A stretch of DNA of 64,000 nt from contig NC_134031.1 of NCBI RefSeq assembly GCF_964204645.1, forward strand, positions 20,343,910-20,407,909, read 5' to 3'. The translations under genes were made by a program, and so were the position numbers. Numbering within the stretch: the first letter of the stretch is position 1; each line of letters starts with the position of its first letter. Below the pieces are notes generated by a model, which worked only from the letters and a program-made list of their open reading frames with translations, was not told the DNA's origin and ran no database searches. Source of the DNA: Tubulanus polymorphus (Eukaryota > Animalia > Nemertea). Below are positions 5,951-63,897 of this stretch, piece after piece.

Positions 5951-6117
5951 CAGTGTTTTCAATAAGAAATTGACAAGCTAGGTCCCTTCGAAAAACAGGA
6001 GGGTCTCATAATATGTCACAGTCCCTGAAAGAACAGCTGGTTTGAAATAACAGGCGGGTCCTTTACAAAAGACAGACGGGTCTGGGACCTGGGACCTGGC
6101 TCTTATTGAAAACACTG
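5951..6117. mobile_element. MITE with 16-bp perfect TIRs (hAT-like CAG ends)
   Basis: cagtgttttcaataag ... cttattgaaaacactg. Confidence 0.7.
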
Positions 6118-8615: not shown

Positions 8616-8840
8616 TCACCCTCAATACCCCCTCCACCCTCAATACCCCCTCCACCCTCGATACCCCTCCACCCTCGATACCCCTCCACCCTCGATACCC
8701 CCTCCACCCTCGATACCCCTCCACCCTCAATACCCCCTCCACCCTCGATACCCCTCCACCCTCGATACCCCTCCACCCTCGATACCCCCTCCACCCTCAA
8801 TTCCCCTCCACCCTCAATACCCCCTCCACCCTCAATACCC
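8616..8840. repeat. 17-18 bp C-rich minisatellite (~13 copies)
   Basis: Unit ccctc(g/a)atacccc(c)tcca. Confidence 0.95.
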
Positions 8841-11005
8841 GGCATTTTAATCTCACCTCAGTGGAGATACAGGAACATGTGAACCTCAGTTGCACAAAGA
8901 AAAATGTACAAATGAACCCTGAATAGACAAGCGCCAAAAATGGTATAGTCCAGGAGAAATATTCAACAGCTCTTCTACACAACCGCTCTGATGCTGCGTC
9001 TTTCTGCATCTCCACTTTCCGAGTGTTTAATGAACACTAAGCATTTATGGAATGTCATTTTTCATTGTTTTGTGTCGTCAATTCAATGCATGTCTAATCC
9101 TATGTACAAATGTTATATATGATGCAACAAAGTTTAAGTCTCTCTCTCTCTCATGGTCCGGTTCCACACTGTGGATCTATCATTTTTAATTAACTTTGAC
9201 TCTTTTCCATTGCGCTTTTCCAGAAGACAATAAAATAGAAGATCTCCGACATCGCCGAGACAGAAAAATTGGCAGAAACTTCAAAACGTATTAATGGAAA
9301 GAGAAAGTAGATGATTCCTCTTCTTGGTGAACACAATCTACCAAGGTCATCGGTCTTTACTGAGATTTATGTAGTAAACAATGTATTGAATTTCATATTG
9401 CGCTATCACACTTCTATGGCATCGTCGCTGTAAACTTCTGATTAAAAACTGAATTTTTCATCGACACCCGAGAGACATTTAAATGGCTTCATGAAGTCGA
9501 CAGGATGCTTTTAGCTATTATTAATTTCGATTCATAAAAACGGATAAGATTACGAGCGTTTTATTTCCGGGCGCGGCTTTGAATTCAAAGACTTCAGTTC
9601 ACACGAGCTGTTTCCAATAAAACTAGGAGTCTACGGACACCGTGCCAACTATTGCTCGACAATCTGACGATTTCAATATTCAACGCCCCCTGGCGAACAA
9701 ATACAGAAACCAATGACCTGGAAACTCATCGCAATCATAGAACACGTCTTGAGCCGTAACTAATTGATAGCGGTAACAAAATACGCACAGGTACCATTAT
9801 CAATTCTGTAAATAAAATCTCCCCCTGGTAGCTGGAACAAAACACTGAATAATGCTAATTAGACACGAGGAGATGCTGTTCTACAATAGTGCTATGCTCC
9901 AATTGGGCTGAAAAAAATTCTAAGATATTGACGTCTCAGTCAGTAGATATAAACTAAACCGTCCAAAACAGACGTTTCAAATCGAGCACTCACAAAGTAA
10001 TCGCAGAGTATTCAACAATAATCTAGAAAAAACATCGGCTTCTTGCAAATCAAACCGGCAGACTTTATTGACAAACGTGCAATTTATCGCTCTGAGAAGT
10101 TGCAAAAGATTTTTTCTTCGGTACATATAATCAATTGAATTGATCAGTGATGGGAGCTACGCAGTAGAGTATGTCAGAGTTCATTTTGATGATAGATTTA
10201 AAAAGACATGACTCGCTCATAGATGTGTGAATAGCTGCATTGAGGCAATGTTGAAGGTTTGGCTCCAATTTACTCGGGCCAGAAGCTCAAAATATGGTTA
10301 AAGATAACCGTTGGATTGGATTAATACCATAGTCAATTAACAATGAACTTTGTGTAATTGTCACTACGTCAACTATCCACTGGTTAACTGTAAACAACTT
10401 TTGAGCATCTGGCCCCTGGTCAATGAATTGTCATCAAACTGATATAGTCTTCATATTTGTATAATTGGTTATTATCTATCTTTATATCTGTCTCTGGCAT
10501 GTTGTGCTCGTCGCGAAGCGTTTATTGTTTTGAAATGTCCTAGAATTTACCATGGATTGGATTGAAATTCTTAATGTCTAAAACAAAATAATAGCAAGTG
10601 ACTGCAGGTAAAAACAACAACCAGTGATAACGCACTCTGATTTGGTCCATTCTAAGTTGGTCTGTTCCAGGTCTAACGTCGCTTATAACTACAAACTAAT
10701 GAATAAATGATTAGTCAACTCACTGAGAAATTCAATGGCATTTAGGTTCGGTAAAACTACCCTTCACCCCACATGACCAGTCGGGCATTAGAAACTATCG
10801 ACCGCACATCGGTTTCCTGTCATCAGCGTCGATTGTGGCGTTTTCTATCAAACGCTCGGAAGTTTGACGTAATATCGAAAAAGATATTTAAAAAATCGTT
10901 TCCGTCACCGAAATGGACAAATAATTAGACCGTGTTGGCAGCGAATCGCCGCAAGTTGTAACAACAACGAGACCGACCGCTGAGCAAACATATAAAAACA
11001 CATTC

Positions 11006-11542: not shown

Positions 11543-11915
11543 TCTACCGCAGTAAGAAGCACTGTTTCAGTCGACCGCAGTAAGAAGCACTGTTTCGGTC
11601 GACCGCGGTAAGAAGCACTGCTTCAGTCGACCGCAGTAAGAAGCACTGTTTCAGTCGACCGCGGTAAGAAGCACTGCTTCAGTCGACCGCAGTAAGAAGC
11701 ACTGTTTCAGTGGACCGCGGTAAGAAGCACTGCTTCAGTCTCTACCGCAGTAAGAAGCACTGTTTCAGTCGACCGCGGTAAGAAGCAATGCTTCAGTCTA
11801 CCGCGGTAAGAAGCACTGTTTCAGTCTACCGCGGTAAGAAGCACTGTTTCAGTCTACGGCAGTAAGAAGCACTGCTTCAGTCGACCGGAGTAAGAAGCAA
11901 TGCTTCAGTCGACCG
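11543..11915. repeat. 28-bp minisatellite (~13 copies)
   Basis: Unit gaccgc(a/g)gtaagaagcactg(t/c)ttcagtc. Confidence 0.95.
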
Positions 11916-25109: not shown

Positions 25110-25722
25110 CAGGGCAGCCAACCTCTGAAGAGTGCTATCAGTAACTAATTGTATTTTTTCAAGTAACTTTTCATTGAAATATGAGTGAAAATGTTGAAAT
25201 AAATCAGTAATCAACAGTAAGACCCTCAGTAACATCTTTCATATTTTTGTCCAAATAAATCAGTTATCAACAGTAAGACCCTCAGTAACATCTTTCATAT
25301 TTTTGTCCAAATAAATCAGTAATCAACAGTAAGACCCTCAGTAACATCTTTCATATTTTTGTCCAAATTAATCAGTAATCAACAGTAAGACCCTCAGTAA
25401 CATCTTTCATATTTTTGTCCAAATTAATCAGTAATCAACAGCAAGACCCTCAGTAACATCTTTCATATTTTTGTCCAAATTAATCAGTAATCAACAGTAA
25501 GACCCTCAGTAACATCTTTCATATTTCTGTTCAAATTAACCAGTAATCAACAGTAAGACCCTCAGTAACATCTTTCATATTTCTGTTCAAATTAATCAGT
25601 AATCAACAGTAAGACCCTCATTAACATCTTTCAGTTTTATACAGCATCAAACAAATCCAATCAGTATTTTTCGTTATCAAATGATAACAAATACTGAAAA
25701 TCAGGAACAGTTGGCAGCACAT
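25110..25722. mobile_element. MITE (CAGGGCAGCCAAC...GTTGGCAGCAC TIRs) carrying an internal 56-bp tandem array
   Basis: TIR-like ends. About 7.7 copies of aatcagtaatcaacagtaagaccctcagtaacatctttcatatttttgtccaaatt at 25201-25633. Related unexpanded fragments at ~21960-22055 and ~56764-56830. Confidence 0.65.
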
Positions 25723-28486: not shown

Positions 28487-28601
28487 ATAATGCATTGTTT
28501 ATACGATTCATATCATTGATCCAATGAAAAATAGAATTCATTCATTCCTTTCATTTCAGGTCGAAGTGAAAACTGCAACGAAACCGACCATAGGACTGGA
28601 G

Positions 28602-30926
28602 ATGGATAAACGATATCGCTGGGCGCGAGTGAAGATGAAAGACACGATGATAGTCGGCATGTACGTGCTACTGTGTAGTCTAATGACCGTACACCGGACT
28701 GACGCGTTAACCAGTGAAACGTGTCCGTCGATTTGCCACTGCGACATCCAACGATTGTCGATCAACTGTAGCGATAAAGGACTACAACGGATCCGCGTTC
28801 TCATACCGGAAACCACCGAGATTCTCGTACTCGACGGAAACAACATCGACATGATCCCGAACTTCGCGTTCGAGCATCTGTGGAATCTTCGTCGCTTGAG
28901 CATTCAACGCAACAAAATCGTTAAAATCGGCGCCAACGCGTTTCGTAACCTGCGTAATCTCGAACAGCTACATCTCGGCGGTAACCTACTGACCGACGTC
29001 AACAATCTCGAACTACGCGATCTGCGTAATCTACGCCTGCTCGACCTGCACGGTAATCGTCTCAGCCGCGTGCCCGACCGCGCCATGAAATATTTACAGA
29101 AACTCGAAACGTTGAACGTCAGTCGCAACGCTATCACATCGGCGAAACTAAAACCCGGATTCGAACACGCGTACGAACTTCGATCGATCGATTTGAGTTT
29201 TAATAATATCAGCACGTTACGTAAAGCCGACCTCGACGTGACGTTGTGGTGGGGTAAAGCGAAACCGATGCGTCTCGATTTATCGCGTTGTAATCTAGTG
29301 CGTATAACTCCGGGCGTGTTTTCACAGATGTATCACCTACGCTGGCTGTCGCTGTCCGGTAACGAGGACTTACTTTACGAGGATCTGCGCTCGGCGCTCG
29401 CCGATCTTCAACTATCGACGATCTCGTCGTTGTACCTGTCGTCGATCGGTATCCGTAATATCCACAAACTCGTTAAAGGTTTACAGATATCGACGCTGGA
29501 AACGCTCGATTTATCGGCGAACGCAATCGAGTTTATTCGCAAGAACACGTTCCTCGCGTTCCCTCATCTGAAACACCTCGACCTCAGTCGTAACAACGTA
29601 TCGATCGTACCCGGGTTCGTCGGCTTGGCGCGACTCCAACAGCTGTCGTTGGCGCGTAACGCCATCACCGAAATCAACGACGAAATGTTGAACAATTTGT
29701 TCGCGTTGAAATCGGTGGATCTTTCGTCGAACCGGTTGGCGCGTCTGCCGGCGTCAACGTTTACGGCGCACACGGATATCGAAACGCTTCGACTCGACGC
29801 GAACCGCCTCACCGAACTCGCGTTCACGAAAACTCTCGAAAAACTAACGAAATTATCCGTCTCTCGTAATAAACTGTCCAATATCTCGTTCGTGGCGCGT
29901 ACGCCAAATCTGCGCGAAATCGACGCCGCCGATAACGTCGTACGGCGCCTGAACCCCAAATTGTTTCCCGCCACGTCGAAGATCGTACGCGCCAATTTCT
30001 CGGCAAACGCTATCATCGCGATCGAGGACGGCACGTTCGCCGACCACTCGCCGCAAATTCTCGACCTGTCCGACAATCATTTATTAGCCGTCGGAAATTT
30101 CGGTTGGCGCGGATTGAAACGGCTGAGTTTACGACATAACTGGATAAACTCGATCACCGGCGACACGTTCAAACAATCGCGAGACCTGCAGTATTTAGAT
30201 TTGAGTTACAACTGGATTACGTCGTTGAACGGCGCATTGGCGTACACGCCGCGCCTCAAAACGCTACACCTCGGAAAAATGCCGATACGTAAATACCTCG
30301 AATCGGCCGAGCTGACGGATTTCGCTCAGCTCACGCATCTCGAGGAACTATCGCTCGACAATCTCGGGCTGCATTTCGTGAATCGCAAAATCCTCGCGGC
30401 GACCGTGCGTCTGCGACGCCTGGATCTCAGTCACAACGCTATAAAACACCTCGCGAAGGACGTCTTCAACCGCGAGGGGCAACTCGAGTACGTGAACATC
30501 TCGCACAATCATCTCGACTCGGTGAACATCGATATGTTTAACGGTTTACATCGTTTAAACGTACTCGACCTGGCGCACAATCCATTCCACTGTACGTGCG
30601 AGTTACTGAACTTTCTTAAATGGGTTCATCGCAGTAACATCAGCGTCGTCAATGTCAACGACGCGCGTATGTATAAATGTCTGTGGCCCGAGGCGTGGAC
30701 CGATGTGCCGCTGACCGAGTTACATTTCCGTATGGACAATTGTATGGACGCGACTGACCGGACGATCGTTTACGTCGCGCTCGGTTTCCTGCTCGTACTC
30801 GCGATTCTCGCGCTCGTTTTAATGTGCTATTTTATTCGTTGCTGCATGCGACCGCAGCGCACGCGTCGGGACTCGTACTGCGAACTCACTGATGACAATA
30901 ACGACGACGATAACGCGTGGGTTTAG
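28602..30926 (+). CDS. Leucine-rich-repeat type I membrane protein (Toll-like ectodomain, no TIR domain)
   Basis: The 800-codon ORF starts upstream of a 3' splice site (tcatttcag, 28559), so the true start is likely ATG 28602 or 28635. A signal-peptide-like MIVGMYVLLCSLM..TDA is followed by LRRNT (CPSICHC..INCS), >20 LxxLxLxxNxI repeats, LRRCT (NPFHCTCELLNFLKW..C..P..C), a TM helix (IVYVALGFLLVLAILALVLMCYFI) and a ~29 aa tail. Candidate polyA signal near 31912. Confidence 0.92.
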   Translation: MDKRYRWARVKMKDTMIVGMYVLLCSLMTVHRTDALTSETCPSICHCDIQRLSINCSDKGLQRIRVLIPETTEILVLDGNNIDMIPNFAFEHLWNLRRLSIQRNKIVKIGANAFRNLRNLEQLHLGGNLLTDVNNLELRDLRNLRLLDLHGNRLSRVPDRAMKYLQKLETLNVSRNAITSAKLKPGFEHAYELRSIDLSFNNISTLRKADLDVTLWWGKAKPMRLDLSRCNLVRITPGVFSQMYHLRWLSLSGNEDLLYEDLRSALADLQLSTISSLYLSSIGIRNIHKLVKGLQISTLETLDLSANAIEFIRKNTFLAFPHLKHLDLSRNNVSIVPGFVGLARLQQLSLARNAITEINDEMLNNLFALKSVDLSSNRLARLPASTFTAHTDIETLRLDANRLTELAFTKTLEKLTKLSVSRNKLSNISFVARTPNLREIDAADNVVRRLNPKLFPATSKIVRANFSANAIIAIEDGTFADHSPQILDLSDNHLLAVGNFGWRGLKRLSLRHNWINSITGDTFKQSRDLQYLDLSYNWITSLNGALAYTPRLKTLHLGKMPIRKYLESAELTDFAQLTHLEELSLDNLGLHFVNRKILAATVRLRRLDLSHNAIKHLAKDVFNREGQLEYVNISHNHLDSVNIDMFNGLHRLNVLDLAHNPFHCTCELLNFLKWVHRSNISVVNVNDARMYKCLWPEAWTDVPLTELHFRMDNCMDATDRTIVYVALGFLLVLAILALVLMCYFIRCCMRPQRTRRDSYCELTDDNNDDDNAWV

Positions 30927-37200: not shown

Positions 37201-38931
37201 TGTAAGGCTGAAAGAAAATACATTTTTTCTCATTTCTGCTGAGGTTAAGAGTCAACCCGGCCGTCCGGCTGGGCAGCTGTAGCCTTTATATACCCTTTGA
37301 GGTGGGGTGTGGGATAGCGGTTAAAGTGTTAGATTCTGGGAATGCAGGTCGTGGGTTCGCACCCCGTCCCCGTAGTGCCCCAGGGCAAGATACACATCCT
37401 CATTGCCTCTCTTCACCCAAGAGTAAATGGGTACCTGGCCTGATAGATGACTCCTGAACACTGAGTAGGGTTGCTTTGATGTTATTTCTTCCCAGGGAGA
37501 GATGACTGGTGGCTCGAGCTATAGTTATAGGCCGGGGGTAACAATACCAATTTAATGGAAAACACATTTATACATTGTATCCCAGTAGAAGGGGCACTAT
37601 AGACCCCCCCCCCCCCCCCGTATATAGTGTCAAGCTTGTATGACATTATTAAGTTCTTTAACTGTTTGTCCACTCTTGGTTCATTTTTCTCTTATCTACC
37701 TTTCGTTGGTCTCGTATTTCAAATGGAGTCACTACGGCTTCGTTGAGTACTTCGATATCCGTCGCGTGGATTTCTATGTCGCCAGTTTTCATGTTCTTTC
37801 AGCGTGGAAAAAAAGTACCAACAGAACGAATATACACTCAATAAATGTGACATCATAAATTTTTTTTTTATATACATAATCTAAGATCTACAGTGGTATC
37901 TTATAATGCATTGGTTATAATTATGTTCCCAGTTGGCAGTTCGAACAATTAGAAATGAACAGCTTTAGATTTGAGTTGAAAATTTCAACTTTCTCAAAAT
38001 GATAGGAATTGAATTCAATCTGTTAAATGTAAAGGGCTAAATCTTACTGTGAAACTAGAGAGAAGGTTTACCTTATTTTCTTGACCAGGCGGCCGACATT
38101 TGACCATACCACTCACTTTCAACACTGATTCGTAATTCAGTCGCGAAATTAATTCTACTAGTTTATCATCCTACAAAATAGAGTAAATGTAATGCACAGG
38201 ACTTTAATGAAGCCATACTTAGACCTACAGTGCTGCCACGGTTGTTAAGTCAGTAACTGGGTTAAATATATCCTTGTTACAACTGCACTGATTTAGGGGT
38301 AGTCTACTGTGCAACTACAAACTAGACAAAAAGTCCTATTCGCTTATTTCTCAAAATGGAAGGAATTTTGAGTATTTTGTTCAAAATTAAGAGTTTCAAG
38401 CACCTTCAACAGCATTTAGGAATTTTTAAGGAAAAGCGGAGTCATAGGGACCCTGTTAATCAAAGAAACAAGGAAATATAATGAACCCTGACCTTTTCTG
38501 TGGGTAGAATAACTTGCGTTGCGCCGTAAGCATCTCGTAAAGTAAAGAACAACCCGTAACGTTGATACTGCAACCATCCGCACAGCGTCACTTGTCGACC
38601 TTCATCTGTTTGGCTTAAATCACCACACGTGTGAGATCTACAGCGCTGATAGCCTGAAAATGAATACTGAAATAATCATTAACTGAACCAACACTCAGCA
38701 CAGCAGTTCAGTCGCCAAGGCAAATACGAAGCCGTAACCGCCGCCTGATACTGCTGATCCAAACACTACTTTATTAGCAATAGCAGATGAATAAACACAA
38801 AAAATCTGTCACTTACCTGTAAATGATGTGTATATGTTTCTATTAATTATGCGATATGAAATATTTATTGTTGCTCTACTTTTCTTCATCACTTCAGTGA
38901 TGATAGTCCTATAAACTCTCGTTAACATCAT
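34214..38931 (-). CDS. DARS2: Mitochondrial aspartyl-tRNA synthetase, 5' part (11 coding exons, ~389 aa; C-terminal exons not found in window)
   Basis: Phase-consistent GT-AG exons: 38931-38817, 38653-38493, 38170-38072, 37795-37700, 37174-37051, 36729-36683, 36607-36536, 36043-35939, 35370-35179, 35017-34910, 34261-34214. They give an Arg-rich N-terminal presequence-like segment, then [32 protein letters not shown] (OB fold), [91 protein letters not shown] (motif 2) and [10 protein letters not shown]. These match bacterial-type/mitochondrial AspRS. Confidence 0.95.
37305..37540 (+). mobile_element. tRNA-derived SINE with CORE-like central domain (in a DARS2 intron)
   Basis: A-box-like GGGATAGCGG and B-box-like GGTTCGCACCC, then GTGCCCCAGGGCAAGATACACATCCTCATTGCCTCTCTTCACCCAAGAGTAAATGGGTACC, which resembles the CORE domain (GGGCAAG..CAC..GCCTC..TAAATGGG). 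Confidence 0.7.
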
Positions 38932-39290: not shown

Positions 39291-40634
39291 CCATAAGCTT
39301 ACTGGGCAGCACCATTACCCCCCATTTAAACCACTGCTATATCATCATATCATTCAATTTTGCAACAGAGGAGGGGCATAATTGTAATAATAGATAATCA
39401 ATTTTGTTTTTAAATCAATCAAGTTTTTAAATTGAAATTTTACTGCAAAAACCAGAAATGTGAACAAAGTTTTATTAAATTTTAGTCATTACAACATACA
39501 AATTACTTATAGTCATTATACGAATAGCCACTTTGGATAAAATTTGGGACAGCAACAGTGCTGAATGAGTGAATAAACAAACAAGAAATTTACTTTTATT
39601 TTGCATAATATCACATTTGCATTCAATAACATAGAAATTAAAAGAAGAATTTGAGCATTTCAATGCATTCCTCCAACAAATTATTAAAAGTCAATATTAT
39701 TTATTCGAAGACAACTCATGCGGTAGAAAAAACCGATGAAATTAAGCAGGTCCGAGCCCAAGGGCTTCATTCGTTTGAACAAGCTTTTGAAAGATTAAAG
39801 TCTACAAACATTATCACTACATGCAATATGATGAAAAAGTGTTAAAGACGCCAGAAAAGAGATTTTGCAATAAGTATTGCGCAGGCCGAGCAAAGCCCCA
39901 AGGGTTTGAGAATTCATGTGCTGATGTGATTAGTACTATCACGTTGCAATATAGGTTGATGTCATGTTTATATTTCTCAAGAAACTGCTCATCTTTCTTG
40001 GAAAAGACCTTGATTGGAATCGGTATTTCCATAGGAAAGCATCAACCTTTGATTGTTGCTAAAAACCTCATGAAATGATCGTAAGGTTTAAACGTGAATC
40101 ATATTTATTTTCATACAACATAATAGAAAATGCCAGATGACGTGTTTGAGGAATTATAATGTAAGTTCCTCAAACACGTGGACTGTATTTCAAAAACAGT
40201 CCAACTATAGATGTACAAACTATAAACTAAGAGAATTAACCAAACACTGATCATATATCCTCACATAAACCACTGAAAAGCATGAGGGTGAAAAGTTGCT
40301 TTAAACTAAACTGAATGATGAACATGTCGTTTTATTCTCATGACAACAATTATACCTTGCTAAATTGCAGGTATTGTACAGCATGTTCTTTATGAACAAA
40401 CACGTGAACTGTATTTGGTAAAGTTTATAGCTGTTTTTCATTCATGTAAATTGTATCAACCAGATTTTGTTCGTCGAAGCGCTTATAATTCACCGCTTTA
40501 CGAAAACAATCGTTTATCATTAAACAACCAGACTTGAAGCTAATTGTGATCATTAGTATGAAAACTACTCAACCTCCGGATGTGGATTTACACATTTACA
40601 ATAGAAGTTCAAACAGCTATCAACAAAACTAAAA

Positions 40635-42000
40635 CATTCAAAATTGTCTTATCTCGCCAACTCATCCAGTTAGGATTTAACACTATTATGAAGATATCGA
40701 ATCAATCTTCGTTATAGATATGTCATTAATATATTATCTTAGTTAGATTGCTATATTTCTCTTCTAACGTACCAGTACACTTTAAAGATATTGAATTAAT
40801 TAGGCTAAGCTCAAGAATTTCACATGATACAAGTTTCAATTAATCATTATTTTAACTTCTAATTTGAATTTATCACTATTTGAATCCATCATTACATCAG
40901 AGTTTGAGATAAATACACATTCAAGTGGTTACTTAGAAATTGCATGCCTTAGTCATTTCTATATTTGACCTTTTACAGTACACTGTGTACGACGACTGAA
41001 AACCTTTTTTTCGGCAGGACCTCCTTGGTGCGGTGCTTGGTGAAATGATTCTATAATAGTTTGAAGGAGAGATTAGTTAAGGAGAGATATTAGCTAGAGG
41101 AATAAGACCTAAGTTAAGGATTTCCTGTCAGAATAAGGCTCTCAATCTAAAATACACAATGAAATTGTAATATTCAACCATCAAAATTCATGATAGTGTG
41201 TCCGATATGCAGATTTGTTGATCTCAATTGGATCGAAAGTAAATCTGCCTTAAAATGATTTTGGCAAATAGATATATCATGTATTAACTAGTTGATGGAT
41301 GTGATGGATTCACTTAGATACAAATAAATGTGTTGAAATACATATCTGTCAGCTATATCTTATCAGTTTGATTATATCTACATACAATTACCTGAAAATA
41401 ATCTTTAATCTTACATTAGATATTGAATTCACTAGATATTAAGTAATTGGCTAATTGTCCTAATTCGTCCTAGCTATATTCTAATCATTGGTTAAACAAT
41501 AATCATTCAGCTTCATCCAAACATGACTAACAGGAAATGAATCAATTAAAGCTTTGGTTTATCTCACATTCGTCAAGGTGTAGAGACTGAATCACAGTTT
41601 CTAAAATCACATATAGCAACTATACCCTAAGTCTACTTCCCCATATGTAATACCCAGATCTCGATATTGCCCTAGACACTATATCCGCTGAGAAATTCAT
41701 TAATGAAAATGGTTAAACAGCACACAGAATGTGGTGTTAAGTATTACCTCAATCTTTAAAGAAGTATCAATATATTATTTACAAAAATAATCTATTAACC
41801 GACAATCAAGTTTAATTGATAAATAATATATATATAACTAGTTTATAACTGTCTCATCTTAACAAGTAAACTTTGCCTGCATGTATATTTTAGTAGGCCC
41901 TGAAATATCTACCAATAATTTTGTATCCAACTTTATTAGAATCATAGTTAATTTCTAAGCGATTGGTCAATTAGAATATTTTCCTATTTATATTTTCATT
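40635..42000 (+). repeat. ~1.35 kb direct repeat, copy 1
   Basis: Aligns with 44596-45937 with only scattered substitutions and short indels. Confidence 0.95.
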
Positions 42001-42649
42001 AAGATGAAGTTTCTGATTTCAAATATCCACGTATGATCATCATATAGAGCAATGGAAAAAGCTCTTATAAAGTTAAAATTCTAGGTGAAAATCGATATAT
42101 TCAACTAATTGGTCAAGTCCGGTCAAATCCGTCATGTCATACAAATTCCCTAATATGGGCCTTTGAAAATATCAAAGCCATGAGAATAGTACATCCACAG
42201 TTCAGTAAATACTCGCAGAATACTGCCTAATGTTATGGTCCATCGTGAACTCAGGCAATTACTAGCTGCTCTCAAATTTTTTGTACAACTATTTAAGGCA
42301 CACCGGACTGGTCAGATGTCCATAAAAATCTTAAGATACATTTAAATGATTTCCAATCGCAGAAATTGGTTTCAAAACAAATGTTAAAAAAGCACAGCCA
42401 GGTGCACAGAACTATAGGTGCGGCCCGACACTTTTTGGCCCTGCATGATTTTTAAAACATCATCGTAATCCAATAATGAGAAAATTACGCATATTAAGTT
42501 TTTATTACGTCTAAAGTTCAAAGTTCATTTAAGTCTAAAAATTTATACACATTCCACATATTTTCGCACATGCAACTTTTTAAAATCCTTGCTACTTAAA
42601 ATGTTTAGGCTAAGCACATTATTTTCACGCCGAGGAAATATAAAATTAA

Positions 42650-42880
42650 CCACTATTACTAAGATTGATTGATAGAAGACTAAAAGGCCAATTCATCCAA
42701 TCATGGCAGGCTGATATGGAAAACAGGTTTATATGACATTATCACAAAACATTCAAAGCTATGCTTAACTAAGTATAAAAATTATCTGGGTTTAAGATCA
42801 CAATATCATGTTGATATTATATTTCAGTTTAGACATAACTCAACCGACCTAGAGTCAAAACCAGGCGGTGGACGTGATCA
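42650..42880 (+). mobile_element. Degenerate non-LTR retrotransposon (RTEX-like) C-terminal relic
   Basis: IDRRLKGQFIQSWQADMEN...YHKTFK...NYLGLRSQYHVDIIFQFRH...RVKTRRW across stops and frameshifts. Resembles the IKQRLxDQFIQxW...YL..R..I.KFR...IETGRW LINE motif. Confidence 0.5.
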
Positions 42881-43258
42881 TTTAAACAGCGTCAGCAACT
42901 TAACTAATCTTTCTGGGAGCAAAAATCAAAATCATGCAGCGTAAATTTTATGAGACCATGGACGTACCTCCATGATGAGACTGAGCAGGAACTTACAGTC
43001 AGATTACAAAACAGAATGACTCCTAGGTTTACAGATTTGTCTCCACGAAAACAGTTCACCCAATCACTTTAAAGTATAAGGATGTGATTTTATTGAAATA
43101 TTCAAACGTAGAACTCTAATTATCCTAACTTCAATTACATTAAATAATTCATTATAAGTAGACTGTAATCTGGTAAATTTTTTAGACCAGTTTGTACAAG
43201 TGTGAAGTGTAAGTATAAATCATTACTTTACTATACTTTGAAGTCCACTATTGTCTCT

Positions 43259-43720
43259 GTTGCTCCTTAGTGTTTATAAGATTCACTAGCTGCTCCTGAG
43301 TCGGTGTTTATAAGATTCACTAGCTGCTCCTGAGTCGGTGTTTATAAGATTCACTAGCTGCTCCTGAGTCGATGTTTATAAGATTCACTAGCTGCTCCTG
43401 AGTCGGTGTTTATAAGATTCACTAGCTGCTCCTGAGTCGGTGTTTATAAGATTCACTAGCTGCTCCTGAGTCGGTGTTTATAAGATTCACTAGCTGCTCC
43501 TGAGTCGATGTTTATATAATAGGTACGAGCTGCTCCTCGAGTGTTTATACGATTCACTAGCCGCACCTCAAGTGTTTATACGATTCACTAGCCGCTCCTC
43601 AAGTGTTTATAAGATTCACTAGCTGCTCCTAGAGTGTTTATAAGATACACTATTGTAAGATGCGCTATTGTCCATGCTGCTCCTCGAGTGTTTATAAGAT
43701 CCGCTACTGCTGCTCCTGAA
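43259..43720. repeat. 34-bp minisatellite (7 near-perfect copies, then degenerate copies)
   Basis: Unit tgtttataagattcactagctgctcctgagtcgg. Confidence 0.95.
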
Positions 43721-44595
43721 TCATAATGTTTGTAGAAATCCACCATCTCGTTGAAGAAATCCATAGTTGGGTCGTAACTCGCTGCTGGCTCCACAACTTC
43801 GCATCTGGACATCTGCAGTTTTCATCGGCATCAGTAGTCGTCTACTTTTGGTTGTCGTTTACCAATCGAAGACCATTATTTCCAGGATAGAGTTTAGCTG
43901 AAATAAGAAAAAAGAACATCCTTTGAGGCAGACCATACTAACAAGCACTGATTATAATTTACACATTAATTTGAATAATACTGGCTGCCATGTTTTTTGT
44001 AGGGGAAAAAATTCCTCGAAATTGATTGCGGCTTAAGACCACAATAATTAATAGTAGTTCAGCAGCATAAATACATCACTGTTTAAGACTAGTGACAATA
44101 GAATATGAGGCTGGATATAAGATCAGCCGTGTGGACCGTTACATGTAAATTAAACAACATAGAGGTCTGATGTCTATACTAGAATAATTTCAGATCATTT
44201 TAATTCATCTTTATTATAGATATTTAAACAATTGGTAAATTATTGAGCTATGTAGCTATAGTTTTAGCTATAGTTTGTTTTGGCAATTTGACTTCCTATA
44301 TCCTAGTAATAACCCTAGATTTTAATTGTCAGCTAAACAATATTCCTATTATCGAATTAACTTTATTGTCGGTTAATAATGACTTTTGTATGATTTCAGT
44401 AATTCTTAATATTGCTCCCGATACAAGGCTCTGCTTGATTTCCGAGCGGTGTTCTGTCAGGTTCACTCATCCTCTATGAGCGTGGTTCTACGGACTTAGG
44501 AAACTACGATTCCTTGCCCACACCTTGACAAGTCCAGAATTCCGCCAAAACCTGTCTGATTGATTATAGTCCTCGTTCCTTACAATATAAGACAA

Positions 44596-45937
44596 CATTA
44601 AATTATCTCACCAACTCATCCAGTTTGGATTTAAACACTATTATGAAGATATCGAATCAATCTTCGTTATAGATATGTCATTAATATATTATCTTAGTTA
44701 GATTGCTATATTTCTCTTCTAACGTACCAGTACACTTATTTAAAGATATTGAATTAATTAGGCTAAGCTCAAGAATTTCACATGATACAAGTTTCAATTA
44801 ATCATTATTTTAACTTCTAATTTGAATTTATCACTATTTGAATCCATCATTACATCAGAGTTTGAGATTAATACACGTTCAAGTGGTTACTTAGAAATTG
44901 CCTTAGCCACATTTCTATATTTCCCATCTACATTAGACAGTGTATGACGACTGAAAACCTTTTTTTTGGCATGACCTCCTTGGTGCGGTGCTTGGTGAAA
45001 TGATACTATAATAGTTTGAAGGAGAGATTAGTTAAGGAGAGATATTAGCTAGAGGAATAAGACCTAAGTTAAGGATTTCCTGCCAGAATAAGGCTCTCAA
45101 TCTAAAATACACGATGAAATTGTAATATTCACCCATCAAAATTCACGATAGTGTGTCCCATTTGTTGATCTCGATTGGATCGAAAGTAAATCTGCCTTAA
45201 AATGATTTTGGCAAGTATTAACTAGTTGATGGATGTGATGGATTCACTTAGATACAAATAAATGTGTTGAAATACATATCTGTCATCTATATCTTAATTA
45301 TCAGTTCGATAATATCTATATACAATTACATGAAAATAATCTTTAATCTTACGTTAGATATTGAATTCACTAGATAATAAGTTAATGGCTAATTGTCCTA
45401 ATTTGTCCTAGCTATATTCTAATCATTGGTTAAACAATAATCATTCAGCTTCATCCAAACATGACTAACAGGAAATGAATCAATAAAAGCTTTGGTTTAT
45501 CTCGCATTCGTCAAGGTGTAGAGACTGAATCACGGTTTCCAAAATCACATACAGCAACTATACCCTAAGTCTACTTCCCCATATGTAATACCCAAATCTC
45601 GATATTGCCCTAGACACTATATCCGCTGAGAAATTCATTAATGAAAATGGTAAAACAGCACACAAAATGTGGTGTAAAGTATTACCTCAATCTTTTAAAA
45701 AGTATCAATATATTATTTACAAAAATAATCTATTAACCGACGATCAAGTTTAATTGATAAATAACATATCTTTAAATAGTTTATAACTGTCTCATCTTAA
45801 CAAGTAAACTTTGCCTGCATGTATATTTTAGTAGGCCCTGAAATATCTACCAATAATTTTGTATCCAACCTTATTAGAATCATAGTTAATTTCTAAGCGA
45901 TTGGTCAATTAAAATATTTTCCTATTTATATCTTCAT
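44596..45937 (+). repeat. ~1.35 kb direct repeat, copy 2
   Basis: See copy 1. Confidence 0.95.
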
Positions 45938-46759
45938 TGTTGAGGCGCGAAATATCTATACTAGAAAATATTTTGATATTCCTAAGATACTTATTGTACA
46001 TATCTTAAGAAAAATCTGTTGATAAATAACTGGCCTATCTACATTTCAATACTCAGCCAAGAATATTCATATGAGACCTAACGAGTAACATTAGAGCCAT
46101 GATTGTTTTAGATTTCAACTCACTAATAACCATTCAACCTTCAATCGGTTTATAGTAAAATTGAGAAAATTGAGAACTTCACCAGCGTCTCTGTTCTCTC
46201 CAGTGCTATACACATCCTGCCCTTGATGCTAACCCAGTAATGAAAAATCAACTTAGCTTTTTATCAAGACTGCCAAGTTCAGTTTCGAAAGGTCTCTTGG
46301 TGTTTTGTTGACGAGTTTAATTCAAGCTGGACTTCTGGTCGGTAGGATCTAGATGGCTAATGTATCTCATGCTGAGCCTTTCCAGATTCATGTTAAGCTG
46401 AAATGAGAAAAAGAATGACATTCTGTAGTTACACAATTCTTTGATTAATTGTAATTGACATGTGTATCAACTTAACTTTCTTAAGATTGCTGAGCATCCT
46501 TTTTTCATCGTCCTATGGTGTCTCCGTCATCTTCTTAATCATGCCGGGCCTGTTCAGATTAAGTTTACCTGAAAAAGTAAAAAAAGACATTTCTGTAGTC
46601 ACACAATCCTTTGATTAATTGTAATTTACATGTGTATCAACTTAACTTTCTCAAGATTGCCGAGTTCAGTATCGTCATCTTCTGTCCTCTTGAGGCATCG
46701 TCGTCTTCTGGGGGAGTCCTGAAACGAAAAAAAAGAACGGAGATGAAAACCTGATACGG

Positions 46760-46900
46760 AACAAAACTAATGTCCGAAAGCGTCGGCTCTCCTTCGCCGG
46801 TCATGTGCAGAGGATGCCAGAAAAAGAGTCAGCCAGGGATTCGCTGCCCTCTACACGCCCTCACACAGAACGCGAAAAACCAAGACGACAACCGCTTCAA
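46760..46900 (+). mobile_element. RTE-clade LINE ORF 3' relic (left hairpin arm; inverted copy at ~47390-47530)
   Basis: Translates VRKRRLSFAGHVQRMPEK...(frameshift)LYTPSHRTRK/PRRQP. The other arm gives VRKHQLSLAGHVWRM...YTPSYGTRKPGR. This resembles the RTE C-terminal RxRRLxFAGHxxR...GxRxPGRP motif. Confidence 0.7.
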
Positions 46901-47019
46901 AATCACCATCTAACTACAGGATGTCCTAACCGACGTCAGTAACTGACAAACCTATCAGATTGCACAACACTAAAATAGAGCAGTACAACCAGATTGACCG
47001 GGTAGAGATTCAAGATCTC

Positions 47020-47296
47020 AACTAGCACTCAAAAGCGTGACAAGAGACTTCATCCACTGACCGAGGTTGTCACAAGGACACAATGAAACTAGCACTCACA
47101 AGCCGACAAGAGACTTCATCCACTGACCGAGGTTGTCACAAGGACACAATGAAAACTAGCACTCAACTAGAAATCAAAGAGCGTGACAGTAGAATCATCC
47201 CTCAGCCGACTCAGAATACCAGAAACAAAGAGCGTGACAGTAGAATCATCCCTCATCCGGGTGGTCACAAGGACACAATGAATGCTAGTAGCGTGA
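47020..47296. repeat. Nested direct repeats inside the hairpin loop
   Basis: ~67-bp unit actagcactca..gacaagagacttcatccactgaccgaggttgtcacaaggacacaatgaa x2, plus caaagagcgtgacagtagaatcatccctca x2. Confidence 0.85.
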
Positions 47297-48799
47297 CAAT
47301 CCAGTATAACCACTCCATTTTAACCCTGTGTAATCCAACAGATATGCCCGTCATTGACATCACTCAGCACACTCTGCAGTGAGATGTTGAAGTGAAGCAG
47401 TTGTCGTCCTGGTTTTCGTGTTCCGTATGAGGGCGTGTAGAAGGCAGCATTTCCTGACCGACTTTTTTTCTGACATCCTCCACACGTGACCAGCCAAGGA
47501 GAGCTGATGCTTTCGGACATTAGTTTTGTTCCATGGAACATCGAAAATCGACAGAGAAATCGGCCCTGAAAAATATAACGGGTTAATTCCTGAAAAACAG
47601 AACGGGTTAAAGGCTGCAAAATAGAGCGGATTAATAAACACAGAACAGCACAGGACAGCACAAAGACGAACAGTATCACGTAAAACATAAAGACGTCGTT
47701 CCTCATGAAGGAACCAGCTTGTAGAGCGCAGCGTAATCGCGAAGAAGAACGCCAGGAGGAGAATCCACGTCAGCATAGTGTCTGCACGGTGTGAAGAGCC
47801 TGAGGTGAATGACTGGCTTAGTGATTCTACTTACTGTTGACCGGTGGCGTATTTCAATATTGACCAATAGGCAGCCGCGCTGTTTGTCTCTTATTATTGT
47901 GAATGGGGTTTACTGAAGTTTGTGGAAGGTTCCGCGCTGATACACACGCGACGTACCTCTGTAGTACATCCAGCATACAGACCGGGCTCGGCCGGTACCA
48001 TTGAAATATTGTTCTATAGAAATATCTCTGAACATTTGAATTGTCGAAGTTACCGCATGATAAAACACAGACGCGCGACGTCACCGACCTCTGCACACAC
48101 GGCATATGGAATTGAATGGAAGACCTGGAGGGACATGCCAATATTTGCTTTTGCAAATTGCCAGTTGGAAATTTTTTTTATCCGTCCGCTAGCGTCACCG
48201 CAATGTATTAAAAATATATTGACCACACATATCACAATAACGTGATATAGGCATTATCAATAACACATTTTAAAGGAACATTTATCTTAGCCAATAAAGA
48301 ATTATGTGATGGATGTGGGGCCACCGGGCTCGGAGTCGTATTTGAAGTTTGGGGTGAACTGTTGCTTAGATCATCCAATATCCCAAAAATAGTAACTTGG
48401 TTTAGGATTTCGATATCTGCTGTTCTATTGCTAAGGTTAATGCCAATCGTAGAAAGATCTTATATGTTTGGCGGACTACTGAATCGGTTAAATCGGCCGC
48501 TAATGGGTAGATGTTAGATCCTATAACCGACTCGTCGGAGCTACCCATTTCTCGGAGGCGGAGCTACCCATTTCTCACTTCCTCCGAGAAGTAATGCACT
48601 ATTGTGGACACGGAAATAAATAAAATTAATTGAATTTGATAATTACAGAATCTACTTTTAATGGATATTTCGGATAGATATGTGGTGTGTATGTAGTCGT
48701 TGATTGATGAGGTAGGTTAGACGAATCCCTCGAGTAGTTCAAAATCATTTATAACAAGTCAGAGTATCTTGAACCAGGAAGCACTCATACGCGATCCTC

Positions 48800-49672: not shown

Positions 49673-52600
49673 ATGAGCGAAAAGAACACTATTACAAAAA
49701 ATCTTTCATCAGAGAAATCTCAAACAGGCGTCGGCCAATGGAGAAACGATGAAGACATCGGGGGTTTTAGGAGTAAACCCCTGAGCGTTCCCGTGGTGAT
49801 AGCCCCTCGTGATGGCGACGCCATCGACCAAAGCAAATCGGCACCGGACAAAATCTGCGCGCATGCCGATGCGAAGAGTCGTCTCGCGTACGCTCCAGAA
49901 ATTGAAAACAACGCGAAAAATCCTAAAACTAGAGAAAGGTTTGTATTACTTTAGATACTGATTGAAATTGTTAGGATTGTCTCGGGGCTCTTCCCCATAT
50001 CATTTTGAAATATTATACCCAATGCTTGCTGGTATATTTTAAGCACCTTAATGTTAAAAATCAAAGATGATAATGACGAATTGTATATAAATCATAACGT
50101 TTTTCACTGAAAAATTTGATATATTTTCAAGCGATTTTCGTCGCTGATTCTAGTCGATCTGAGTTTAGGTGCATTTTAACAACTAGTTACAGTAGCGGAT
50201 TAAAAATCAACATGGCTGCCTCATGTACGACGATCGAAGAATTTATTCTCTTTTACCAGAATGGCGTATATTGGAATAATGCATAATTTGATATTTCCTC
50301 ATTGATAATTTTGAAACAATTCGATGGAAACAAATTCTTGTCAGATTTTTCCCTTAATTCATTCAGAGTAATTTTCATTTTTGATAATCCACACCCTAAT
50401 TCTGTAAAATATATACAAATATGAATTGAATAGATTGGCATATTGTTGTTGTATTTTTTGGGGAGAAAATGGTGTGTGTAACCTGTATTCTGAGTGACAC
50501 CATCAGTGTATCGGTGTGTTATAAGAAGCGTTGGCAGGTCGATCTGAGACAGCTTTTAGTCCCCAGAAAGTTCTGTCCCCAGTGAAACGATTTTCCCTCA
50601 CTCACCGAAGTGAAATAACAACTAGTGCACTCGATCAAATGAGATACTCGAGTTGAGAAAGAGAATTGAGACAAAATGCTACGGCGATTTATTATTAGTT
50701 AGAAACTGATTTTATGTTATGTTTGATTTCGTGGGCGATGATATATTTTTGGTTTTTATTTACAAAGTAAATTGCGTAATGCGTTTCTGAAATTTTTTCC
50801 CGACATCAGATATATGTAGAGATTTGCTGAATAATTCAGCACTAAGAGTTCACGAACGACGCTGAAAATGTATCTTAATTGGTTATTGTTCCAGACAAAA
50901 GGGGCAAGAATAGTAGTGGGAAATGTTGTGACCATGAAGAACATGCACAGTAAAAACACCATCTTGGTTACTTGTTTTGAGTATTTCGATGCATGATTTT
51001 TGTTTTCCCGACTTCTGAATAAAGTTACAGATGTTACCGATGAAAGTGTGAATAGAAAACAAAATGGAACTAAAGAAATGAGCATCATTCGAAACATTGG
51101 GCTCCGTTGGCTGCTCGTACAACCAACGTCGACGGTGAAATCAACAGTCACAAACTGATAACTGTAAATCAGGGCCACTAGACACACAACAGATAAACAC
51201 AATCTAGAAGCCGTATTCACTGTCCAGAAACGAGGACCCCTAAACGGAAAACAAACCACGCACATTCGCTCGGTAGCTATTAGAACCAACGTCCACGGGC
51301 TGATTGTAAAAGAACACAATGAGAAATACTCGTAGAACATACATTGAAATCGTGTCGATGGTTTGATCAGTACAGACTGATATAACACATCAGACAATAC
51401 ATTCATAAATATGCAGAAATATATGCAGAGAACGATAGAATCACTGATCGCTAGTTGAATGAACATCCGGCTAAATGAATGTCGCCATAGTTTACGTTGT
51501 AACATAATGATTACAATCAGTAAATTACCGATGAATCCGAAAATAAAAATGAGACTAGTGAACGGAAGATAAAACCACAAATAATATGTTCCACGCAACT
51601 CTGTTGAGCTTACTACGAGTTGATCGTATAAGTTTGTAGTAACATACAAAGACGACGAATTTTGAAGAAAAGTCATCGCGCAGCAGCCGTGAGGAGATTT
51701 TCTTCAGCGTCTGAATTCACAATGAAAAACAAATGAGATGTTCGTGTATATTTTTCAGAACATATAAGCAAATCAAAGAGCTGTAAAGTTTAACTGATAA
51801 TGCCTTTTGGCGATATGTATATACATGTAAAATTAAGAATTTAGGGTTTAGGAAAAGTTCACCTCGCTCATATCTTCCGAGATTTAATTTAGTAAAGTCG
51901 GTTTAAAATGCTATTTTTCCCGTTGTCAATTTGCGTTGAATCTTTGATGTGCAGGTTCAGCTCGCTTTGTCAATTTGTACAAATTATCCCTTAATGCACC
52001 CGCATATAATAAATTTGAAAATATGAACACACAAAGGTTTATACATGTAGTAAAAAGAAATGTGATTTTTAAGTTGTGTTTTAGCTATTGGCTGAACTAT
52101 CTGACAGTTCAAGTTTCACTCATTCCAAACCCTGAAAAACATAATCAGTATTTCTGTAGGAAACTCAAATTTTGTCAGCTTAATAGCGAAAGAATCCAGG
52201 TCATTGTCTCTCACCCACTTTCCCTTCGAACACTTGCCCTCCTGGCAAATTCATCTGAATTATGTAATGAAAAGATAAGAGATAAGCATGCTTTATAAGC
52301 CGCAATCACATGGAGAAGATTTGAACCGAATCAGGCCCCCACCCCCCCAATTTAGCCCATGCCTAATTAGAGAGCGCATTCACATTCGATACAATGCTGT
52401 GACAAGAGAGGCAAGTCACTTCCAGAACCAATTGCAATTCACAAATTTGGCTTGGGCCTGGTGCAACATTTTTCGTTGGGCCAACTTGGCCCAGGCAAAA
52501 CAGGCATTGGCCCATTCCGGGCCTAGTTTGGCCCAGGCCAAACTCGTGTGATTTGTAGCTATAAAAAGTTTTTGAACAGAAGTAACATGTTGGAATTATG

Positions 52601-55600
52601 TTATTTCAATAGGTCATCAATATTTTTCTTATAAATCCCATTCTTTTTTTGCAGACGGAGGTCGATGTATGGAGCCAGTCCCGATTATCATTTCGGACCG
52701 AAAGCGAGCATAATGAAACAAAGTCTATCGTTGCTGTAAGTTTACGATACTACGCACAAATACCTTACCAGCGGTGTATCGAAAAATTAATCAACAACAG
52801 CCTAAACCATGCTGTTATTAATTAAATGAAAGCAGTCTGAATAATCAGACAATCTTATTGAACAACTGATTTATTACATGTGAAATAACCTTTGAACAAG
52901 TGGCCCCATTGTTTCTAGTTTCACTTGTTTCGTATGAAGGAAAGGTGCTGCTGATCCTTGATGATAGAAATTTCCATTTTACAATATAAACATCGAAACT
53001 CGTTGCGGATGACTCTTTGCTAGAGATATTTATTGCCCTAATGGTTAAGATGCTTCCCGTACGTCATAATTGTAGGACTATTCAGGACCCCGGAAGTCAA
53101 CGTTTGATTTGGTCGACTCCTCCTGAAAATGTTCTCGTTATAAAGAAAATCATGGACCCATCGATTATTTCTCCATTCAAAAGGATCATAGCCTGGTTCA
53201 TTGAAGTAAGTCACAATAATTTTCCGCCAGAATTTCTCTTGTATTCTGAATATTCTTTATTACGCGTAGATGCTTCTTATTGTAGGAGAAAAATATATCG
53301 GTTTTCATCGAAGCATCCGTACTCGATGAACCTTTGATAAAAGAAGATCGTCAGTTTCAGAATGTTATCAAACACGTTCACACCTACAGAGAAGGTGAGT
53401 TGTTTAGATATTAATTTAGATAATTTTCAATTAAATGAAATTCAACTACCGTATATAGGATAAAATCTAATTCACAACTTGAGCTCAAAAACTCTAGATT
53501 TTCTTTCAGGCGAAGATTGCTTGAACGAGAAAATAGATTTGATTATTTCACTAGGAGGTGATGGAACCTTACTTTATGCCTCGGGACTTTTTCAGGTTTG
53601 CTAGCGACAATTTTTCTCATATTGCGAGGTTAACAAATCTATTTTACCAGTAGAGTTTGAAGTATTGTTGTGTTCGGAGGTTTTCCATTCCATTAGATAA
53701 CACTTCTATATTCTCAAGCTGTTGAGAGCTTTATCAATGATGCAACCCGTGATAATGGTGTAGCCCAAAAATCTTTAATAAGTCACGTGACATGATAATC
53801 AATAATATTGATTTATACAAAATATTATGTCATAGTAACCTGTTCTTATTTGATTTGATTGCAGCAAAGAGTACCTCCTATTATAGCATTCCATTTGGGA
53901 TCTCTAGGATTCCTTACGCCATTCCAGTTTGATAGCTTTGAGGAGTACCTCATTAAAGTATTGGAAGGTAAGAAAAAGAAGAGAGGTGCTGCAACTGAGC
54001 AGATGTTTTTCATCAATTCAGTGGAACAATCACAACTTAAACCTTTCAGACCTAAGCTGTGTCATGAAACTGGGCCTGAGGGGTGCTCAGTGGTTTGATT
54101 GATTAAAGTGATGGAAAGCCTTAGACCTGGTATTGGTCAGTTGCTATCAAGTTGCTATCATCAAGAGATATAGAATTGAACTTGTAGTTATTATACTAGG
54201 GAATATGCTTTGAGGCTTGTATATGATTAGTCTGAAGTGGATGAATGCCCCAGGATGGCCACGCCAAAGTACTCACAGTCCCATTAAAATTCAAATGATT
54301 TGATAAGTTTCAAAACAATTGGAAATGAAACAACTTAACCAACAAGGAACTGGTGTTTACTGGTTTTAAACTCTGTTTATGTGTTTTTATAGGAAATGTC
54401 CCTGTGATGCTACGCAGTAGGCTAAAGTGTGTTTTACACAAACATCCAGGGGATAATTTAGAAAATCTTCAACGAGAATATCCTGCAACGCTGCAGCACA
54501 AAACCAAGGGGTCAAATTTCAATGTCTTAGTAAGTTATATTCTTTTAATATAACTCAAAATAAGTCTTGTTGAATATCATAATATGAAATTCTTTTTTAA
54601 TGCAAACTTTTTTCACGCATACAAATAGACATGTTTACACGTAAGCAAACTCATTATTTTGTTGTTGAGACCTAGAACTTTCAAATATAAATACCGTTTT
54701 ACTATTAGATTTTTCTATTTATTAGTTCTAAAAATGTTTAGATTTTTGTTGTTAACAAATCCATCATCCTATGCATATAATTATTGAATTCCAGATGTAT
54801 CAGTTTATTCTTGTAATTTGAGTTAACTATTTGCGCTGGGGTTTGTAGGGAATCTGACAATTCTGAAAAGTGAAAAGGTCTTGCAATTATGACCATTCAG
54901 GACTACATTGTAGTATCAGTGGCCAGTTTGACTGTTTTTGCTGTAATGGGCTATATGGTCAAGATGTTCAAGTGGCCTTCAGAAAAATCAGAGCTACAAA
55001 CTCCATAAGCATTTTCAACCTGTCCAACAAATCAGCAAAGCCTAAAGCCCTCATAGTGCTAAATATTTGATACTTATCAATCGCCACTTTCAAACAACCT
55101 GGCTCTGCCCCTGTGTATTGTTCTTGAATTCTCAGTAATTCATTGTGTGTTGTGAATTACTTTTATTGTGCCTTATGTGTTTGCTCTGCTCTGCTCGGAC
55201 CTGGTACCAGTTTCTGTCCACACATTTCAAAATTTAGAACGGACCTGGTTCGGTCTTTTAGGTCGGTCCGAGTTAAAACAGTCTAAAATGGCACAGACCA
55301 ATTTGGAACAGACTTCTTCTCAAGTGCGAACGCTTGGTCCGTTCTAAATTGGAACGGATCAAATTTAGAGAGTTTAGAATGTAGTGTGAATGCAGATATT
55401 GTTTCATTTATTAACCTATACCTATTATCTAACTACATCATGTTCTATTGTCTATAATCTCTGTACCAGTTATTAATGCGGAATAAATCAAATATGTACA
55501 TAATCATTTCAGGTGTTGAATGAAATAGTGATTGACAGAGGGCCGTCATCTTATATATCGAATTTAGATTTGTACATCGAAAAACGCCTCGTAACATCCG

Positions 55601-62037: not shown

Positions 62038-63897
62038 TCAGCTGCTGATATTTCCGCTAACGTGACGTCGGAAAAGAGCGTCGTCGTAATCGTCGTAAGT
62101 GTATTCTCCTTCCTGTGATTAATACAAATGATATGATATTATTCATTTTCGGTAGAGGAATTTTCAGGGAAGGAATTCGTCAACGCTGAAAGGGTTGTAT
62201 TCGCGTACATGGGGGTTAAAAATCAGCCAAATTGTATGGGGTGAAATTTTTATCTAAATAATGTTTTGACAGTCACCTTTATGGCTAAACTCCAGGGGCC
62301 AGTTGTACAGTTATGGTTTAAGTCAAAAAATTGATCTTAAAAATCTTAAGACTGGTCTAAAGTTGTTAGATTGGCTGTAGAACTAAGATAGCCTTAGACT
62401 AGTCTTAAGTCTAAGCTGTGAATGTGCAACTGGCCCCAGAATCACATATTCAAACCCACAACAGTGGAACTGATTCCCGGATGTAAACATCGAAATATTT
62501 CTAAACTTACCTCTTCAATAATGTTATCATCATCACTAGATCGTTCTTCACCTTCAGACATCGGTCGATGAACATCCGGATAATCATCACCGCCGTGATC
62601 AATCTCCATTTCCGGTTCTGATTGAACCTCTTCATCGCCGTCGTATTCATCTTCTTCTATACAACAACAAACAACACTTTTTAGATTCAGAGAAAAAACC
62701 TTTCAACTACACGACAAAACCCTGCAGCACCCCCACATCTAAAACCCTGCAGCACCCCCACATCTATAACCCTGCAGCACCCCCACATCTAAAACTCTGC
62801 AGCACCCCCACATCTAAAACCCTGCAGCACCCCCACATCTAAAACCCTGCAGCACCCCCACATCTAAAACCCTGCAGCACCCCCACATCTAAAACTCTGC
62901 AGCACCCCCACATCTAAAACCCTGCAGCAACCCCACATCTAAAACCCTGCAGCAACCCCACATCTAAAACCCTGCAGCACCCCCACATCTAAAACTCTGC
63001 AGCACCCCCACATCTAAAACCCTGCAGCACCCCCACATCTAAAACCCTGCAGCACCCCCACATCTAAAACCCTGCAGCACCCCCACATCTAAAACCCTGC
63101 AGCACCCCCACATCTAAAACCCTGCAGCACCCCCACATCTAAAACCCTGCAGCACCCCCACATCTAAAACCCTGCAGCACCCCCACATCTAAAACCCTGC
63201 AGCACCCCCACATCTAAAACCCTGCAGCAACCCCACATCTAAAACCCTGCAGCACCCCCACATCTAAAACCCTGCAGCACCCCCACATCTAAAACCTTGC
63301 AGCACCCCCACATCTAAATAAATCAGTCAGGGACCTCATAGTTATTTTCAGCTAGTTTCTTTTCCAGCCACAGCTAGCATAGAGAATAATGATAGCAATA
63401 CAAAATAGCTTACTAAGTACATAGAACTTTTTAAAAATTTAAAAAAAATTGCTCAGTGTTTATTAATAGTGTTCTTTCAAACAATGTGGTTTAAAAAGAC
63501 GGGCAATGAATGATGGCATGTGCTCTTTAACCAAAAATTGATAAAAAATGTTTTTATAGTAATTTTATGGTATCGATAACAAGTCTTTTGATCTTCAGGA
63601 CTGTGGGGCTTATGCATGCATGTATTGCATTTTGGTTAATAATATCTACATTCATCGTTCAAGTTCTACATGGCAATAATTACCGTTATCAGAAGCAATG
63701 TAGAATTTCGGCCGATCGATTCTTGAGACGAGTTCAGCTAGATCAGTGAATCCAGTATCCGCTGTCATCAGGTGTGTTTTCGGCGACGCTGTTTTCTTGA
63801 TGCTGTCGGCAACTTTCTTCTCCTTGAACAGTTGTTTAATCATGTCGCTCTTGGCCCACGCGGAAAACAGTGTTTTTCCGTGGTTAAAACCAACATC
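62038..63897 (-). CDS. sws: Neuropathy target esterase / swiss cheese (PNPLA6/7 family), last three coding exons; gene continues beyond the right edge
   Basis: Exons 63897-63684, 62656-62511 and 62112-62038 (TGA) are phase-consistent. DVGFNHGKTLFSAW and DTGFTDLAELVSRIDRP match the NTE C-terminal DVGYQYGK..FxxW and SGFTDLAEIVSRIEP motifs, followed by an acidic tail. Candidate minus-strand polyA signal ~59977-59982. Confidence 0.88.
62294..62438. mobile_element. PIF/Harbinger-like MITE (same family as 33775-33911)
   Basis: GGGGCCAGTTGTACA...TGTGCAACTGGCCCC TIRs. Internal sequence is reverse-complementary to the 33.8 kb copy. Confidence 0.7.
62716..63318. repeat. 25-bp minisatellite (~24 copies) in an sws intron
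   Basis: Unit aaaaccctgcagcacccccacatct, highly homogeneous. Confidence 0.97.

Follow-up and report, generated by a model that had tools for sequence, protein, structure and literature searches.

The fold-back at positions 46756–47534 of the window (the whole 64 000-nucleotide stretch of Tubulanus polymorphus DNA analysed) is best explained as one of about 150 dispersed members of a lineage-specific family. The units of this family would be non-coding, contain introns and have a Pol II-like organization, with a G-U-rich RNA rod of ~780 nt, in the sense of the minus strand, as their conserved core. We assign this reading a probability of roughly 0.55. Established within it are the fold and its copy number, a bias that runs through the family, the conservation of the core and the lack of coding selection.

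We aligned arm 46756–46996 globally with the reverse complement of arm 47297–47534 and obtained 77.3% identity (184 identities), within the 75–80% estimated earlier by a sequence-only reading of this DNA. Of the differences, 31 are transitions that leave a G-U pair on the minus strand and 9 are transitions that do so on the plus strand; the remainder are 14 transversions and 3 gap columns. The 31:9 split was significant in the binomial test that the sequence-only reading had proposed (p=6.8×10−4) and was the same under five scoring schemes; the bias reported there from a manual count (~32:9) thus survives computation. CpG sites, also noted there, were touched by four of the nine plus-type differences. 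The bias was strongest in the inner third of the stem (19:3 for 46912–46996; 12:6 for the outer part). Folding of both strands, likewise proposed, gave −439 kcal/mol for the minus strand (z −28.8) and −319 kcal/mol for the plus strand (z −24.1), and the minus strand was also favoured when folded as single-stranded DNA (−186 vs −158 kcal/mol).

The hairpin had been described as ~240 bp arms around a 300-nt loop. The arms stand, but the loop is not loose: on the minus strand only, the 300-nt centre extends the stem nearly to the tip (z −2.8, vs +1.8 on the plus strand), adding 79 Watson–Crick and 20 G-U pairs. Related units within the centre pair mutually with many G-U pairs, likewise on that strand alone. 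The structure as a whole is therefore a rod of ~780 nt. It has unbroken helices of 30, 26, 21 and 20 bp, and the minus strand forms, within a single molecule, the long imperfect duplex expected of an hpRNA. The hairpin had no Rfam match at gathering score, and inspection by eye did not reveal a hammerhead core.

Each arm retrieved more than 300 candidates in the 268-Mb genome. Among 20 loci retrieved with the left arm, 19 contained the entire fold-back plus flanks and one (L007) was disrupted. A manual tally gave no fewer than 123 separate loci, and we consider about 150 copies a fair estimate; sequencing depth of the DNA run, a crude measure, was 3600–8900 over the hairpin and about 30 on unique flank. 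Because about 150 copies are dispersed through the genome, the fold-back is not the single host locus proposed by the sequence-only reading. Comparison with 3.2-kb loci from 25 other copies, and of the window with other copies, showed colinear homology from about 39520 to 48140 (~8.6 kb). Two family copies are interrupted by unrelated tandem or palindromic arrays (L007:1950–2560 and L013:2216–3226).

The copies are solitary and favour distal chromosome arms, with 52 of 90 lying in the outer quarter of chromosomes (p=4×10−11). On four chromosomes, only 1 of the 51 best-scoring reverse transcriptase (RT) elements lay in those distal regions. The best-scoring RT-domain elements, many with ORFs of more than 1000 codons, crowd the chromosome centres, opposite to the hairpin family. 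Most copies form a young subfamily, 96–99% alike, and subfamily mosaics occur. Mean identity between copies was 95% in the core, 88% in arm 47297–47534 and 86% in arm 46756–46996, so that each arm resembles its counterparts in other copies more closely than its own partner (77%). The hairpin core is conserved far above the rest of the repeated unit, whose features are as follows.

39520–48140, minus strand: whole repeated unit, the reach of colinear homology to other copies; ragged ends
39476 and 39600, minus strand: AATAAA motifs (consensus matches)
40649–42000, no strand assigned: 94% direct duplicate of 44603–45938, internal to this copy, ~1.35 kb
43270–43652, no strand assigned: 34-nt tandem array, part of the repeated unit
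46258–46718, minus strand: three tandem ~170-nt cassettes, exon- plus intron-like, purine-rich
46647–46718, 46477–46568 and 46258–46397, minus strand: exon-like parts of the cassettes
46756–46996, minus strand: 3′ arm, with the RTE-like peptide in antisense (between-copy identity 86% on average)
46997–47296, minus strand: central core, with related units of 51 nt (two) and 66 nt (about two)
47297–47534, minus strand: 5′ arm of the rod, RTE-like peptide in sense, frameshifted (identity 88%)
47360–47776, minus strand: 138-codon ORF with hydrophobic, signal-peptide-like start; most copies retain its ATG and reading frame
47565–47635, minus strand: tandem 24-nt branch-point/polypyrimidine/AG units, putative acceptor region
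47829–48090, minus strand: promoter-like leader, common to closer subfamilies (consensus matches only)
47834, minus strand: donor-like GTAAGT (consensus match)
47864–47868, minus strand: CCAAT box (consensus match)
48077–48084, minus strand: CRE-like motif (consensus match)

Read along the minus strand, the order is CRE/CCAAT, the donor-like site at 47834, the ORF start at 47776, the acceptor-like units, the rod, the cassettes, the 34-nt array and AATAAA. The signals that resemble splice sites, promoter elements and poly(A) sites, all of them consensus matches, share this strand with the rod. An uncontrolled check of one sequencing run presumed to be RNA placed no contig on this DNA. The splice signals already attributed to the minus strand were recovered as acceptor-like matches, whose AG dinucleotides (47566 and 47590) precede the stem by about 30 nt. 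In the small cassette introns the donor-like sequence is non-standard, namely GTTAAG, with GCTAAG in cassette three, and it is kept across subfamilies.

The signal-like first exon and the short charged exons would also suit a multigene family in decay, coding for a small peptide that is secreted or sits in the membrane, in which the hairpin is an intronic or regulatory passenger. The conserved ATG with a purine at −3, the hydrophobic stretch and ORF indels whose lengths, in most copies, are divisible by three speak for it. Those indels, however, sit in triplet repeats, and the ORF shows 14 synonymous changes where chance predicts 14.6. A protein homolog search with the ORF was blank. Without synonymous excess and homologs, ORF 47360–47776 is treated as not coding. 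The cassettes are non-coding as well, because their exons, assessed singly rather than as a joined spliced model, vary from 66 to 98 nt across copies, take all three phases and contain stops. Neither the purifying codon selection nor the frame-keeping exons expected of a secreted-peptide family were found. A signal-peptide gene was rejected because codon selection is lacking, and we regard the peptide family, even in decay, as very improbable. The repeated unit thus reads as non-coding.

The sequence-only reading had derived the arms from an RTE element. The peptide that it quoted is present in the arm, spread over two frames, and resembles what we take to be the C-terminus of RTE-clade LINE ORF2 (R-x-R-R-L-x-F-x-G-H and P-x-H-G-x-R-x-x-G-R). 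The arm resembles ORF2 in these two motifs but is frameshifted and only 240 nt long. Searches for RTE similarity in Pfam, with phmmer (1.8 billion proteins), by a word-based homolog method, in the ESM Atlas and in metagenomes were blank or uninformative with these short, frameshifted queries, and because of the short queries the blanks weigh little. The RTE origin was not confirmed by any of these searches. The RTE-like frame is broken at the same place in both arms, which fits a single inverted duplication of a fragment that was presumably already dead. Two independent LINE insertions were rejected, since every complete copy has both arms at the same spacing and with the same frame break.

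The locus had also been proposed to act against RTE elements, but neither an intact parent LINE nor a live RTE target was found among the best-scored candidates. None of the 150 best protein matches placed the arm in a long ORF; their open frames were shorter than 200 residues (longest 193 aa). A pattern for the intact arm motif had no match in the T. polymorphus genome, in which a control pattern found family copies. The best-scored DNA and protein matches look like family copies only, and among the many intact RT ORFs of the genome none could be tied to the arms. The sole evident complements of any arm-derived small RNAs are thus the family's own transcripts.

The G-U bias is a property of the whole family. 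An excess on the minus strand was found in all 24 complete copies (p from 0.03 to 7×10−5), and all of them fold better on that strand. In gap-free columns the family consensus has 122 Watson–Crick, 26 G-U, 4 A-C and 7 other pairs. The sequence-only reading held that neutral decay gives no such asymmetry. This is too strong, as strand-biased mutation or repair can do so, but the measured effect is too small. On the minus strand of the unpaired flanks, the ratio of C>T plus A>G to G>A plus T>C was 1.33 (p=0.09), and the 26:4 ratio departs from this at p=5×10−4 and from its square (1.77) at p=5×10−3. Rare changes at Watson–Crick sites of the arms gave 23 G-U and 24 A-C. With a flank asymmetry of ~1.3-fold and rare changes at 23:24, present-day strand-biased mutation is insufficient as the sole cause. 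ADAR edits fixed by retrotransposition were also rejected as the source: the usual alternative to a shared G-U state is G-C (24 cases, against 6 for A-U), the copies keep their introns, and A>G changes show no excess.

Transversions per site were fewer in the arms than in the flanks (0.105 and 0.142; p=0.03). Changes on both sides occurred in 22 of 184 pairs, compared with 15.4±1.9 in shuffles, which take no account of relatedness. Common descent of the copies inflates the covariation, and gene conversion could produce it; arm-to-arm conversion, which can create compensatory pairs, is suggested in some copies. The contrast between shared and private changes reached p=0.04 by allele counts (Fisher) and p=1.0 and 0.18 on the arm trees. 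As the copies are non-independent, the bias may stem from a few old events. The earlier claim of selection on pairing is thus favoured by a G-U excess beyond mutation bias and by covariation, whereas the tree contrast is not significant and conversion can mimic the covariation. Taken together, selection on minus-strand pairing is likely, and it would act at the level of RNA.

The same asymmetry could have arisen, with no RNA function, in mobile DNA of a non-autonomous kind, either Helitron-like or carried as cargo by a large transposon, if the rod matters as single-stranded DNA or if G-T mismatches escape repair on the strand exposed by replication or transcription. Non-autonomous Helitron and Pack-type elements are dispersed, keep introns and contain captured fragments and minisatellites. 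The Tubulanus copies share these properties: they are solitary and dispersed at about 150 sites, retain introns and carry a captured fragment and a minisatellite. The 96–99% identity of the young subfamily, private changes that look neutral and the better fold of the minus strand as DNA point the same way. A DNA transposon or Helitron would be expected to have shared termini (terminal inverted repeats or TC...CTRR) and a target-site signature. However, the ends are ragged, and shared termini, terminal repeats and target-site duplications were not seen in the flanks of the 3.2-kb loci. Moreover, the conserved part is the internal 780-nt rod, far more conserved than the rest, and the copies avoid the RT-rich chromosome centres, a distribution opposite to that of the RT elements. 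We therefore consider a mobile element of this kind possible but unlikely.

A true hpRNA family, as in Drosophila, is improbable. Under this explanation Dicer-1 would cut the rod into phased ~21-nt siRNAs that are loaded on a retained siAGO and silence RTE-like elements or genes. The unbroken helices of 30, 26, 21 and 20 bp would suit such a substrate, and six Piwi-domain loci were found in the genome (a lower bound, unclassified). Some nemerteans retain siAGO, and processing by Dicer-1 was left open by the authors of that work (PMC11114477). Fly hpRNAs may be TE-derived and multi-copy, with up to 20 in tandem, and the arms of hp-ODox2 match BS2/Jockey (PMC10317233). Against this, only two RNase III loci were found (a lower bound, unclassified by sequence), consistent with one Dicer plus Drosha, and Nemertea are reported to lack DICER2 (PMC11114477); Drosophila-type processing is therefore doubtful. 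The arms also lacked a long-ORF match among the 150 scored, and the intact motif was absent. Fly hpRNAs are defined by Dcr-2-dependent 21–22-nt siRNAs, and their precursors build up in dcr-2 mutants (PMC10317233). Like hp-CG4068, hp-pncr009, hp-ODox2 and Nmy/Tmy (PMC10317233), the Tubulanus family has a long imperfect inverted repeat in a gene-like non-coding unit. It differs in consisting of about 150 dispersed 8–9-kb units rather than a few dispersed or at most 20 tandem ones, in having a paired core more conserved than the arms and in a host in which Dicer-2 was not found. With two RNase III loci, DICER2 reported absent (PMC11114477) and no target found among the best-scored matches, hpRNA membership of the family is unsupported; its mode of action may be that of a long dsRNA hairpin precursor, yet the family does not qualify as an hpRNA gene.

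We therefore return to the family of non-coding units with an RNA rod as the preferred reading. An already broken LINE-like fragment would have been duplicated once, in inverted orientation, in the ancestor of the family. The arms would then have diverged mostly by changes that keep RNA pairing (G-U), lowering their identity as DNA, with occasional arm-to-arm conversion. The whole unit presumably spread as DNA, with introns retained and with exchange between copies. Its transcript would be a long dsRNA substrate for the remaining machinery (Dicer-1, Drosha, ADAR), and small RNAs, if made, would match the family's own transcripts and not a live LINE.

IRAlu-type ADAR substrates are inverted pairs of retroelements within transcripts that form long dsRNA. 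The Tubulanus family likewise has retroelement-like sequence in both orientations and long dsRNA, but it derives from one ancestral fold-back amplified as a unit, and its G-U pairs alternate mainly with G-C.

The preferred reading can be taken further, tentatively: the 150 copies would be spliced non-coding genes whose product, a G-U-rich rod RNA of ~780 nt, is under selection and is processed or sensed with no need of Dicer-2, and this RNA would be the missing substrate of nemertean siAGO or a new class of structured RNA that is abundant and has a sequence-conserved core. We hold this stronger version to be unlikely. Nemerteans are reported to have lost DICER2, yet some retain siAGO, and the cited work leaves the cargo of that Argonaute undecided (PMC11114477). 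In a genome of this kind, a long hairpin that is present in many copies and constrained in structure lends itself to testing whether Dicer-1 makes endo-siRNAs. Should the family be only a relic of mobile DNA, it would remain a clear example of G-T accumulation on one strand, and a caution that an hpRNA gene cannot be defined by its wobble bias alone.

The window contains several other features. A separate ~250-bp high-copy repeat lies at ~37300–37560 (about 79% identity, genome-wide including chromosome centres). Positions 28524–30926 (plus strand) encode, without introns, a leucine-rich-repeat protein of 800 codons, which has a hydrophobic stretch at its N-terminus and a membrane segment at its C-terminus. 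An intronless rhodopsin-type GPCR is encoded at 50756–51676 (minus strand); it has six T. polymorphus paralogs at 52–72% identity, a species-level expansion. The exon at ~53017–53250 (plus strand) resembles what is presumably the N-terminal part of NAD kinase. Minisatellites with periods of 25–58 nt are located at 6900–7815, 8617–8840, 11546–11915, 25197–25633 and 62716–63318.
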